A stretch of 64,000 nt of DNA from Monocercomonoides exilis PA203 (GCA_001643675.2 LSRY02000022.1:868001-932000); one strand, 5' to 3'; positions 2,119-41,336 are shown, counted from the first letter of the stretch. A program made the numbers and translations. Notes: generated from the sequence alone by a model not told the origin.

Positions 2119-2759
2119 CATCTTGTCAAATGGATCCGTTATAAAATGGCTAATAACTGTAAAAAGTTTTGTTTTTCGCTGTTGAATCTTATTTCGGTGA
2201 GTAATTTATCATGCTGCCTTTTATATTGGGAAATAAATTTTCTGGCTCACAGAAGCAACTTTCAAAAGTATAAAATTTTCAATGAAATTTATAATATCTG
2301 TGATTATTTTTCATATGTTACAAAATTCTTTCATTGATGAAAAATTCAAAGATTAATTCCAAACTTTTACTTCCATCGTTTGATTTAACCCTTGGTGACG
2401 TGAGGAAAAAAAATCGTCACGTCCGTCACCACTTTTCCACTTCAAAATAAAAAAAATAAAAAATAAAAAATAAACATTTCTAAACAATATTTCTGATATC
2501 CTTTTTTTCCAACATTTAGCTTATATTCTTTATTTTTTATCAAAAAATTTTATAATAATGAAACCCATAATAATATGATCATGTTATAAACGTTGCTTTG
2601 TTTAATAATCTTGTGAGAAATCCATATGTGTTTCATGAAGTTGGAAAAGTTTCTTTTTCGTGGTATTGTCTAATAATTATTTCTTTTCGAATGATTGAAT
2701 TCAAATAAATGTTTATTAATTATTTAAGAGAAAATAGCACAGCTTTCTGAACACAACTG

Positions 2760-4186
2760 TATCGTTAACAATCAGACAAAGAATAAAACAGAAAGGTTAA
2801 CAGGTGTGCAATGTACTTGTGTTTGAACAATAGTGAGTGGATTTCTTTCTCTGTTTTTTGTTTTTTGAAGTATTATTTTCTAAGCTGGAACGTTGTTTCA
2901 GCAATGAAAAAAAAAAAAATAACTACAGAAAATCGTTAAAATGAACGAAATAGCGAAAGTAATGAAGCAAAGTTAATTGGAGACCATTTTGATCGAAGAA
3001 CTATTCAACAAAATAGATATAATGATTGGAGAAAAGAATCTTTCGATGGAAAACACAATTTTCCTGTTAAAGCTCGTTGGATGTCACAAAGTGCTGAAAA
3101 TAAATTCTTTTGATGAATTTGATGAATTATTATTGGGAAAAAGAATGAGAGAAATGATAATTGATGAAAATAAGAAGAAAAAAGAAATGAACGAAAAGTT
3201 AATGGCAGATCTCTGTGAATGATTCATTTTTCTGGGCCACAGACGTTCGTATGAATTGTTTTCAATCGGTTTGCCGTGTCTTCTGAAGGTTGCCTCGAAG
3301 AAAGACGAGATCGAAGAATCTCAAAAGGAAGTGGAAATGGCTTTTTAAACTTTGAGCAATATTGGATGTCATGTTTGAATATTTCTTTTTTTATTATGGA
3401 ATCATGGATATTTTTTCTCTTTTTTATCAGCCAATCGAGCAAGGTCTCTTTTTGAATGAAATGACAGTAATTGTGAAACACCATCAAGAGAACAGAATCT
3501 GACATGACTTGCTTCTAATTCTGCTTGGACGTTTTTGATAAAAAGATTTTTTAAAAAAAGAAAATCTTGAAGAAGTGATTATGAAAGAATTGCATTTTGC
3601 AAGAGGGGTAATAAAGGAACTGGAAGAGTTGACAAGAAATGTGAATTGGAAGAAAGAGAAAGAAGAGGAAAAAGAAAAAGGAAAAGCAAGAAGAGCTTGT
3701 TTTGAAGAGATGGCTGCAATTATTGGAGTATTTCTTGGGCTTGTGCTTATTGTGGAATGAAAAATATTCAGAGCTTATCAGATGCGTTGTTCAGTTATTT
3801 AGATCAGCGAAGGAAAATTTCAGAGAAATCAGCTTCTGGTGCATTGTTTTATTTGTAGAAGCAGCGAAAAGCAAAGACTTGCAAGTTGATGACTTGCTGG
3901 AGAGTGGAGCTGTTGATGTTGTTTTGGAGGGGATTCAGCAGTTGACATTAGAAGACGAAATGATAAATCAATTTAGGAATTTTTTATGAATCTCTCAAAA
4001 AGATTGAAAAGAGAGATGGACGAAGCAATGGACAAAGCGAAAAGAAAGAAAAGCAGAAGGAGAGTGTTTGAAAAGATGGTTGAAGAAGGATACGAAGATA
4101 TCATAGCAAGCTTTCATGTTACTCCTGATTTTCTTTGCAGAAAATATAATCGATATTTGACTTTGAAATTCTCGATTATTTTGTAA
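2760..4186 (+). pseudogene. Expanded helical protein family, copy 1 (decayed, inside hAT element)
   Basis: Fragments ELFNKIDIMIGEKNLSMENTIFLLK, ELHFARGVIKELEEL, LLESGAVDVVLE, FEKMVEEGYEDIIASFH match the intact copy at 61621-63059. Several stops and frameshifts. Confidence 0.85.
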
Positions 4187-38209: not shown

Positions 38210-41200
38210 TAGACCTGTGCGACACGACTTGCCATTTTTTGTTGCTGTCGGTCACCTAAAAAAAAAAAAAAAAAAAAAAAAAAAAAAAAAAAAAAAAAAA
38301 AAAAAAAAAAAGACTATTTTTTAAAGTTAAAAAAATTAGTAATAACTTTCAAAAATTATTTGAAATTAATTGCATAAATCCTCTTGTGTCTATCCTCTTA
38401 TAATTGAAGATCATGATTCCCAATATATTACAATGAATTAATAAAACTGATTCTTCTTTGTTTGTCTTCATTTTTTGTTGTTTATTTCCAAAAGAATGGT
38501 ATGAACATAGAACCTTTCAAGAATAAATTAATTATTTGTTGCTGATGTGTTTTTTGCATTTTAACAGTTGTATATTCAATTCGTATTCGAAAGTGTAATG
38601 ATTAATGGATATATTTTTTTCGAAAGAACAGATATTTAAAAATCTTTATATATTTGTTGGTGTGCAACAACTGATTCTTTATTATTATTGGTTTTTGGCT
38701 TCTTTTTGATTTTTATGAAGAATTGTTTTCTGAGATGGAAGATAGCATCAAAAGTGTGCAAAAGCCATTTCATTTGAAATGATTGGAATAATTGATGAAA
38801 CGAATAAAGATAAATGGAATCTCATTTTGCAGAAGAAATGAAAAGCCAAAATTTTTACATGAAAAAAGAATTGAATATTTTTTTGCTGAATGCATGAAAT
38901 TTTCTGAAACATGCTGGATTATAACAAGATATTGAAACAAATTTTTATTGTTTATATTGAAGATATTTCGTTGAACGAAAGATCTGAAAAGATAATAACT
39001 ATTGAAAAAAGAAAAAAAAAGAAAAGAACGAAAAGATGTTTATTTCCCCGTATTAACGTTACATAACTTTTAGATTTTATTTCTCACAGAAATTGACAAC
39101 AATTTGTGAGCTTTGTCTTTTGTATGTGCATAAAGGATAGAGAAAAGAAAGAAAACGCAAAATAAAATGGATATGTCTTTGAAAAATCTGAGATTTATAT
39201 TCTGCCTGAAGGTTTGAATCGTTTTGATAATTTTTTTATCACTTTCATCTTCTTATAAGTTTTTGAAGAAGAAATCGTTTAAGAATAACATGATAGAATT
39301 CATGATAATTTATTTGAAGAATCACTTCCTTACTTAATTGCCCTTCAATCAACATGGAAGCTATTGATTTATGGATTTTTGCAACAAAGTCTTGAAAACA
39401 GTTTTAATGTATGAATAGTCTTTTGAAGAAGAAGAAAATCAAGAATTTGAAGGATCCAAGATTTCTGATTATAAGAAGGGAAAAGAATGAAGAAAAGAAA
39501 CAGAAGAAAAACTTGTTTTTATCGAATGGTTTTCTGTTATGAATCATACTTTATTCTCATGAAAGTTGTGGAAAGCTGAATTTGTTGGGCTTATCGTCAG
39601 TATTTATCAGTTATTTCGAGCAAAAGAGATAATCGCATTAATCATGTCAGTAATTGTGCTTTTGAATAAATAGATACAGTGAGAAACTGTGCAGAAAAAA
39701 TTTACGACTTGTTGAAGGATGGTGCAGTTGATGCAGCTTTGGGGAAGATGATGTGGCCAACATTGAATGATGAAAAGGAATATAACGGCTTGAAAGTCTT
39801 ATCGAAAATTTCACAGAAATTGAGAGAAGAAAAGATGAAGAAATGGAAGAAGAGAAAAAATTGGCAGTCCAAAGGAAGGAATTTAAAACAACGCAAGAAG
39901 AAGAATAGAAAAATACAATAGCAAGATTTTTTGAAGCTTTTAATTGGAAAGTATGGAAAGGATTGCGACCTCAAAGTATTGTTGTCTAATATATGTGATT
40001 ATTTTTTTATTGTTTCTAAAAATCTTATGTTCTTCACTTCGCAAATTTTATTTTTTTGTCATTTTTATTTTCTTCTAAAATAAAACAAACATTTATTCGA
40101 TAATAAAAGTTTTTTTTATCAATATAATTTTCCAAGTTTTTTCGAATACAAACAAAGCCTGTAAAAAAAGTCCAAAAAAATTGAATTTAATTCTTTTCTT
40201 TCACAAAAGCAATCGAAGTTAACTTATCTTTCCAATTATTTCGTGAAAAAGACAAATATGCTTGATTTTAAAATGTCAATTCACATTTTTTTGCTGATTT
40301 TTTGAGTTGCTTTGAATACATTTTGATAATCATCTATTCAATTATCAAACAGATTCTCAGTTTTCTACAAAATAAATATAATATTCAAGTATTTTTTCAT
40401 TGAATTCTTGAACAAACCTTACCCATCATCCAACGTTTGTCGTTCTTTTTCACTTGTATTTCAGCAAATCTTGATATAATCATTTTCAAACAATTCATTT
40501 TCATCAACAATTTTGCGAGTCCCATCTCCTCTCCAATAGAGTGATAGATAAACTTGTTGAACCAACTTTCATCTTTAGAAGATAATCATTAACCAAACAG
40601 CATTGAAATAAAAATAGATTAAACTATTTCTTTAAAATTATTATTTCCATCTAACCATTTCAATTTTCATTTTCACGAATGTTTGCTCCATTGTTAAAAT
40701 TTTCAAGCAGTATGATTTTGTTGCTTTTAATGTTTTGCATCCGCTTTGTTCATAAATATTGAAGAATATGAAAAACAATCAGAAATGTTATGGTTGTGAC
40801 TGATAATAAAAGTGAAATCACACATATTTCAGCAGCAAAGCAGGATAATTTGTTTTTCAATTGCTTTTTCAAACATTTTCATTTCACTGATTTGATGGAA
40901 TGTCAGTGACGTCAGTGACATCCAGAGGCAAATAAAATTCCAAGTTTCACTGATCTTGTCAGTGAAAAAATAATTCTGGAAATAATGTAAAAACGAAATG
41001 AAAAAAACATTGCAACAAAATAATGTAATTATTAATGAGTCATAATATTAACTTAATTCAACAAAGCAAAAAAAAAGACATAAACGACTATTTTAGTGAA
41101 AAGAAACATATGTCTTATCATCCTTTTTTTTGATAAATTGAAAACTTATAGAAATGTGTAATATTTTGTGAATTATTTGACGAGGAAAAATTAATAAATT

Positions 41201-41336
41201 TTGATTATTTATAAAAAACAAAATAATCCAATATATGAGATGTGAAAAAATATTTATGGTTATGATCAGAAGAAAATGTCCTGTCGGTCACCTTTGTCAG
41301 TTACTGACAAGATTTGCCACTTGTCGCACAGGTCTA
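38210..41336. mobile_element. Non-autonomous hAT element (3.1 kb) with cargo gene
   Basis: Perfect TIR TAGACCTGTGCGACA / TGTCGCACAGGTCTA. Perfect 8-bp TSD AAAAATTT. Subterminal CTGTCGGTCACCT at both ends. Confidence 0.92.
38600..40020 (+). pseudogene. Expanded helical protein family, copy 3 (heavily decayed, inside hAT element)
   Basis: gaagaattgttttctgagatggaa at ~38717, gctgaatttgttgggcttatc, YDLLKDGAVDAAL...TLNDE match other copies. Boundaries approximate. Confidence 0.75.

Follow-up and report, generated by a model that had tools for sequence, protein, structure and literature searches.

Probable capture of a predicted armadillo-like host gene by Pack-type hAT elements in the protist Monocercomonoides exilis

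A 64-kb stretch of the Monocercomonoides exilis genome (hereafter the window; C17:868001-932000 of the 82.3-Mb, 101-contig assembly to which all genome searches refer) contains two hAT-type DNA transposons, N and E2, each of which carries a broken copy of the same gene. The gene belongs to a family of armadillo-like repeat proteins, as judged by predicted fold. N and E2 are very probably Pack-type elements, i.e. transposase-less hATs with a dead host gene as their passenger, its introns and short flanks included. The finding is one of ordinary transposon gene capture and not of a two-gene transposon. The transposase gene found next to the carried gene in the larger unit (2386-9964) belongs to a further hAT element, T, which inserted later into N and was itself later entered by a miniature inverted-repeat transposable element (MITE). 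What the original prediction had read as a single hAT element is, in short, a nest.

The nest at 2386-9964

The unit consists of the following parts:

2386..5186, + strand: bulk of N, including its left end (N being a non-autonomous hAT of 2.88 kb); left terminal inverted repeat (TIR) TAACCCTTGGTGACGTG at 2386-2402
5034..5056, unstranded: right-subterminal palindrome GTCACTGATGTCAGTGACGTC of N, present in 8/8 N copies at 180-235 bp from the right end
5187..9874, - strand: T, a nested 4.7-kb hAT of autonomous type, dead in the window copy; TIRs TAGTCCATTACGACG / TAATCCTCTGCGACT (TAGTCC.../...GGATTA)
6413..9385, - strand: broken hAT transposase gene of T, interrupted and spread over three frames
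6688..6951, unstranded: 264-bp MITE nested in T; ends GGGTGATT...AATCACCC, 33-bp inverted ends, ATAT on both sides
9883..9964, + strand: right end of N; right TIR at 9948-9964

The inverted partner of TAACCCTTGGTGACGTG at 9948-9964 matches at 16 of 17 positions (0.01 matches expected by chance), and the 8-mers flanking 2386-9964 agree at only 5 of 8 (GTTTGATT / ATTTGAAG). Within these outer ends, T has TIRs of its own and a perfect 8-bp target site duplication (TSD), GTTGGTTT, at 5179-5186 and 9875-9882. A genome-wide DNA search with 2386-9964 resolves two independent repeat families, T and N. Query positions 2802-7490, which correspond to T, recur jointly on C21, C20 and C45 at 88-94% identity and outside any N, and T copies elsewhere are bounded by their own perfect 8-bp duplications (GAACAGAA in L010, TTTTAATG in L011). 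Once 5187-9882 is removed, the window copy of N in turn aligns over its full length with nine other copies (L001-L009; 2.8-2.95 kb), all of them without T. The TIR of these nine reads TA(A/G)(C/G)CCTGGGTGACGTG, and five are flanked by perfect 8-bp duplications (L001, L003, L004, L005, L007). Genome-wide, the N-type TIR has 145 matches, mostly paired 2.8-3.4 kb apart, versus 2 for a control; some 36 N-type elements have paired ends, and the TIR counts point to ~70. The window N is moreover a mosaic, recombined from two N subfamilies: its positions 1-400 are 90% identical to L002, whereas its positions 1600-2600 are 80% identical to L001/L003.

Because T has its own TIRs and its own TSD and recurs without N, the transposase and the family gene are not parts of one element. 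The complete T copies in L010 and L011 lack the family gene, so that the idea of a large element adding a transposase to the gene module has to be given up. Nor was a family gene met together with a transposase in one TIR pair among the elements that were read: the window case is a nest and the complete T copies are gene-free.

T is a member of the hAT superfamily by its 8-bp TSD and its dimerisation domain. The latter was detected in an intact 918-aa transposase open reading frame (ORF; L010:2158-4914:-), the C-terminus of which matches Pfam Dimer_Tnp_hAT (PF05699; E 1.9e-4, 21.6 bits versus a cut-off of 21.4, thus marginal yet consistent) and the Hermes transposase (E 2e-4). The transposase of the window T is ~90% identical to this ORF over most of its length and 72% across the broken N-terminal 150 residues; a Pfam scan of its ORF pieces gave no match. 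Pfam and PDB sequence searches with the 918-aa transposase returned no match to an RNase-H-like DDE core or a BED zinc finger, and a protein database search returned nothing at E <= 1e-10. Our guess is that this last negative may stem from the masking of classified repeats ahead of the published gene prediction (PMC8767320).

As for the MITE inside T, L010 shows an empty site at the place matching window 6688-6951, which suggests a 4-bp or 2-bp duplication; the MITE is probably not a hAT. A second 264-bp copy at 43361-43624 breaks exon 2 of another member of the gene family, copy D.

Carried gene copies and the ancestry of their carriers

The second carrier and the two carried copies in the window are:

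38210..41336, + strand: E2, a non-autonomous hAT of 3,127 bp; TIR TAGACCTGTGCGACA at 38210-38224 and 41322-41336
40902..40919, unstranded: palindrome GTCAGTGACGTCAGTGAC, located in E2's 3' half and within its stretch of homology to the N 3' region
2861..4186, + strand: pseudogene copy A (exons 2-3) in N; tblastn match split over frames 1, 2, 3, 2
~38719..39930, + strand: pseudogene copy C in E2, heavily decayed; profile hidden Markov model (HMM) positions 43-399, 18 stops

E2 has TIRs that are perfect over 15 bp and lies between perfect 8-bp duplications (AAAAATTT, at 38202-38209 and 41337-41344), as had been claimed for it. It was the sole hAT-type pair among the three that a whole-window scan for TIRs plus TSD returned. 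Two of its relatives at other sites (L015, L019) are likewise flanked by perfect duplications, and the genome holds about 50 E2-type left ends, with 22 or more pairs spanning 3.1-3.9 kb and an estimated ~25-50 E2-type elements. Both of the predicted TIR types, the TAACCCTTGGTGACGTG pair (16/17) and the TAGACCTGTGCGACA pair, are therefore present.

Sixteen cargo copies were examined, ten of them in N elements (the window N and L001-L009) and six in E2-type elements (E2 and L015-L019). The predicted layout is borne out: in N and E2 alike, a gene of the same family lies on the + strand at a similar offset from the left TIR, its exon 2 beginning at ~475-520 bp, preceded by ~130-160 bp of 5' gene flank that N and E2 have in common and that is also present upstream of host copies. 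Position and strand of the gene agree across 10/10 N copies, and the E2 relatives L015-L019 (at least five) have it in the same orientation. Element interiors cover HMM positions ~22-441 plus gene flanks that are also found beside host copies. Copy A covers HMM positions 31-436 with 14 stops and is 68-70% identical to copies E and F; upstream of it lie a decayed exon 1 and intron 1, with the acceptor ...ttttttgaag at ~2870. In copy C, the intron 1 acceptor and the start of exon 2 (gaag, then aattgttttctgagatggaa) agree with copy F.

All 16 carried copies are broken by stops and frameshifts, and copies at different loci have stops in common: the stops at HMM positions 156 and 323 are common to L001/5/7/8, those at 205 and 287 to L003/4, those at 118, 188, 256 and 314 to L002/6, and twelve to L015/16. 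The same stops at different insertion sites imply that the elements kept transposing after their cargo had died. A role of the gene as a transposon accessory protein, one of the options put forward originally, is at odds with both observations.

The carriers also lack a transposase, in that tblastn with the transposase against N and E2 gave no match. The hAT population of the genome is large (1,115 first-look transposase candidates, many with open frames of 900-1,000 aa), and the following loci are candidate autonomous partners of N-type and E2-type elements:

C8:56422-68675
C35:317922-324919
C2:1489118-1498137
C48:121625-129833
C44:699910-705187

The right ~430 bp of N are homologous to the right end of the transposase-bearing element on C8 (L033; nhmmer E 3e-78). 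Of the N left arm, only the first 89 bp are widely common in the genome. Transposase-bearing N-type loci lack the remainder of the arm as well as the 3' region of N, a stretch of 957 bp for which about nine N copies were the only matches (17/17 candidates scored). Similarly, the transposase-bearing elements on C48 and C44 have only a ~120-bp terminus and a 50-bp motif in common with E2-type elements, the interior of which is otherwise absent from them. Termini that derive from an autonomous element around an interior that does not are the pattern expected of Pack-type elements.

Outside the gene, blastn of the window N versus E2 finds a 14-bp match only, and it took less decayed relatives and a profile to bring out the homology. 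A profile of the N 3' region, by contrast, matches all six E2-type elements collinearly with nhmmer (positions 400-920 at E 5e-24 to 3e-11) and also picks up the 200-290 bp directly after the gene, without spurious matches in ~100 kb of control sequence. The collinear block after the gene that is common to the two families spans ~250-520 bp (E2 positions 2521-2774 at E 5e-15), and part of the ~520-bp stretch is found neither in the C8 autonomous-type end nor beside host genes. A palindrome after the gene had been predicted as a common feature and is one: GTCA(C/G)TGAC occurs in 8/8 N copies and 3/6 E2-type copies and is absent from 50.6 kb of background. A common opposite-strand coding remnant at the same place was dropped as a candidate, since tblastn of transposase N-termini versus the common 3' block gave a best E of 0.06, on the wrong strand.

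Since the alignment between TIR subfamilies takes in the gene, the sequence on either side of it and ~520 bp from the 3' half, two unrelated captures are unlikely, and we favour a single old capture, common to both subfamilies, as the inference from these alignments. Of the ancestral multi-gene hAT lineage proposed earlier, the common ancestry of the interiors across TIR subfamilies thus survives, and the transposase part, which traces to the nested T, does not. The single-capture inference draws on flanking homology because the protein tree is uninformative (see below).

That two hAT lineages captured family members independently, their like layout being a coincidence or due to a preferred internal capture site, is the least implausible of the other explanations, if still an unlikely one. 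Members of the family make up a few percent of the genome, which makes repeated capture plausible, and over the gene itself N and E2 copies resemble host copies at least as much as they resemble one another. Against this stand the alignment of N with all six E2-type elements, which stays collinear past the gene, and the specific palindrome.

Under single capture, a host armadillo-like gene would have entered an element once, most likely during repair of an excision gap with the host gene as template. The cargo element would then have split into two TIR subfamilies, its ends diverging or being exchanged to suit two transposase lineages. Each subfamily may depend for its mobilisation in trans on a separate autonomous hAT lineage that has nothing but termini in common with it, and recombination or template switching between copies, directly visible in the mosaic window N, would have kept reshuffling the interior.

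Several points count against the Pack-type reading with its single capture. In N, the gene part (element positions 517-1789) is 58-65% identical between copies, versus 80-90% for the adjacent non-coding 3' part (1845-2700); a gene part more diverged than its non-coding flank is not what plain neutral decay predicts. In the candidate autonomous partners, the left part measures 2-5 kb, which leaves room for a family gene. A FastTree protein tree of cargo and host copies does not resolve, splits the N family contrary to its common flanks and is prone to long-branch artefacts. Finally, the 16 cargo-bearing copies that were read compare with an estimated 35-60.

The excess divergence of the gene part in N could possibly be caused by ectopic repair against host paralogues. 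The cargo piece in L003/L004 is 76% identical, as protein, to an intact host gene (C7:1156961-1157329). This copy and a second one of host type (C44:214398-215600) match certain cargo (76% protein, 74% DNA) at least as well as other cargo does, and both are possible sources or conversion partners of the cargo. It is unlikely that the gene once functioned as the second gene of an ancestral hAT lineage and survives in the candidate autonomous elements, or that the cargo was repeatedly re-templated from the ~2,000 host paralogues by ectopic repair. If re-templating did occur, it would account for the greater divergence of the gene part relative to the non-coding flanks, and the elements would act as a shuttle through which transposons and a host multigene family exchange sequence.

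More improbable still than two captures is an ancestral autonomous hAT with two genes, a transposase and an armadillo-like accessory, of which N and E2 would be deletion derivatives that keep the accessory gene. Such an origin would fit the same gene offset and orientation in two TIR subfamilies with homologous interiors, as well as the unexplained 2-5 kb in the left parts of candidate autonomous elements. It is opposed by the nested nature of the only co-occurrence of gene and transposase, by complete T copies that are without the gene, and by the absence of the N left arm beyond 89 bp, the N 3' region and the E2-type interior from transposase-bearing loci. That all 16 carried copies are broken and that the elements moved after cargo death speak against it as well.

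The armadillo-like host family

The six family copies that had been predicted in the window were all located by tblastn (A-F). Besides the carried copies A and C, these are:

20409..21915, + strand: family copy B, three exons, intact-looking (no stops) and divergent; in no TIR pair
42983..44573, + strand: family copy D, exon 2 split by the MITE at 43361-43624
47443..48738, + strand: family copy E, with no TIR pair detected around it
61621..63059, + strand: family copy F; exon 1 61621-61690, intron 1 61691-61745 (55 nt), then exons 2-3

Exon 3 was used for the genome and protein searches with the family, and database proteins (P0009 etc.) for alignment, fold and the Atlas search. In the protein database, exon 3 retrieves 387 proteins (E <= 1e-3), and all 120 listed are M. 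exilis entries named 'uncharacterized protein MONOS_*'. Database members have ~441 aa, and the 120 listed show no precomputed Pfam domain; Pfam searches with the family exons likewise found no family at threshold, Arm profiles included. Structure prediction and Foldseek, which had been suggested for the ~441-aa protein, were run on a database member and returned an ARM-type helical solenoid. The AlphaFold model is an armadillo-type right-handed alpha-solenoid, made up of three-helix repeats, with a predicted local distance difference test score (pLDDT) of 81.6. Foldseek matches (E 4e-5) comprise importin-alpha and designed ARM proteins, and the Atlas neighbours are Arm/UNC45/SPAG6 proteins; template modelling (TM) scores of the Foldseek and Atlas matches are 0.4-0.6. 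The carried family is thus, by its modelled fold, one of armadillo-like repeat proteins.

The genomic search with exon 3 gave at least 2,003 first-look candidates; all 150 that were scored had E < 1e-76, most of them without a stop. A by-eye comparison placed 0/148 intact-looking copies inside the 58 mapped N-type and E2-type TIR pairs, and the whole-window scan found no TIR/TSD pair around copies B, D, E or F. Copy F is a recent duplicate: together with a neighbouring family gene in opposite orientation, it belongs to a segmentally duplicated block (at least 8 kb, ~94% identity) that recurs at C70:203694-212747. This duplication spans the window from 61147 to its end and runs on to C17:~937000; F's counterpart on C70 contains a TAG stop and a change of frame.

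Intact copies outside TIR pairs, the unflanked B, D, E and F and the block duplication of F together indicate that hAT transposition is a minor side route that yields pseudogenes of the armadillo-like family, contrary to the proposal of a host family amplified by hAT. That hAT transposition was the family's main engine, most copies being or having been element-borne, is very improbable, for all that 2/6 window copies sit inside hAT elements and the genome-wide hAT population is large and partly intact, given these same findings and the mere tens of element-borne copies versus at least 2,000 family loci.

In the long-read assembly of M. exilis, repeats make up 46% of the genome and unclassified ones 35%, and expanded gene families have been suspected (PMC8767320). 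The armadillo-like family and its element-borne pseudogenes are likely part of this unclassified fraction, and both would matter for gene counts and repeat annotation in M. exilis.

Other elements in the window and comparison with known systems

The neighbouring genes in the window are unremarkable (malic enzyme, M16 peptidase, reverse transcriptase). An ORF at 13160-14431 (+) with an RVT_1 match (E 1.7e-20) in a GC-richer block (12000-17000) is likely a retroelement. Between E2 and copy D, a 298-aa ORF at 41827-42723 (+) matches Pfam DDE_Tnp_IS1595 (E 4e-15), pointing to an ISXO2-like, Merlin-type transposase. About 470 bp upstream of copy B lies a ~337-bp hAT MITE (~19605-19941). Its ends are of N type (CCYGTGTGACGT), it contains a long poly-T tract, and the N 3'-region profile matches its right end. 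Finally, a 4.7-kb unit at 25443-30123 has 15-bp inverted ends GATGAAATTTGAATA; because it lies within a long (TAT)n microsatellite, its apparent 8-bp duplication TATTATTA is uninformative.

The known workings of hAT elements are unchanged by our finding. What it adds is copy-level evidence of hAT gene capture in a metamonad protist, together with a caution: a transposase beside a host-type gene between matching ends can be the product of nested insertion instead of a two-gene transposon.

In well-known two-gene systems, i.e. mudrB of MuDR, the Myb-like gene of PIF/Harbinger and VANC of VANDAL, the additional ORF is undamaged and maintained in autonomous copies, and transposition depends on it or is aided by it. 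The likeness to these systems, a second gene within the TIRs, is superficial: the gene described here is disrupted in all copies examined and missing from those complete autonomous copies that were read.

A closer parallel is the hAT-borne histone H3 of the fungi Pseudocercospora fijiensis and Pyrenophora tritici-repentis, where, too, a hAT is reported to have captured a host gene and spread tens to hundreds of mostly inactive copies of it (PMC6710886, PMC3538342). The differences lie in the carrier, which in P. fijiensis is described as a complete hAT transposon (PMC6710886), whereas the carriers here are transposase-less; in the mode of inactivation, reported as repeat-induced point mutation (RIP) in the fungi, as opposed to ordinary decay here; and in the captured gene, which in M. 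exilis came from an already huge family.

The best match is Pack-hAT, known from maize and rice (PMC8903248). N and E2 resemble these elements in being non-autonomous and multi-copy, in their hAT TIRs and 8-bp TSD, in their host-gene interior and in having only their termini in common with autonomous elements (PMC8903248). They differ in that the host is an amitochondriate protist, in that the cargo is a nearly complete, intron-containing gene and not a set of shuffled fragments, and in that one cargo module is common to two TIR subfamilies.

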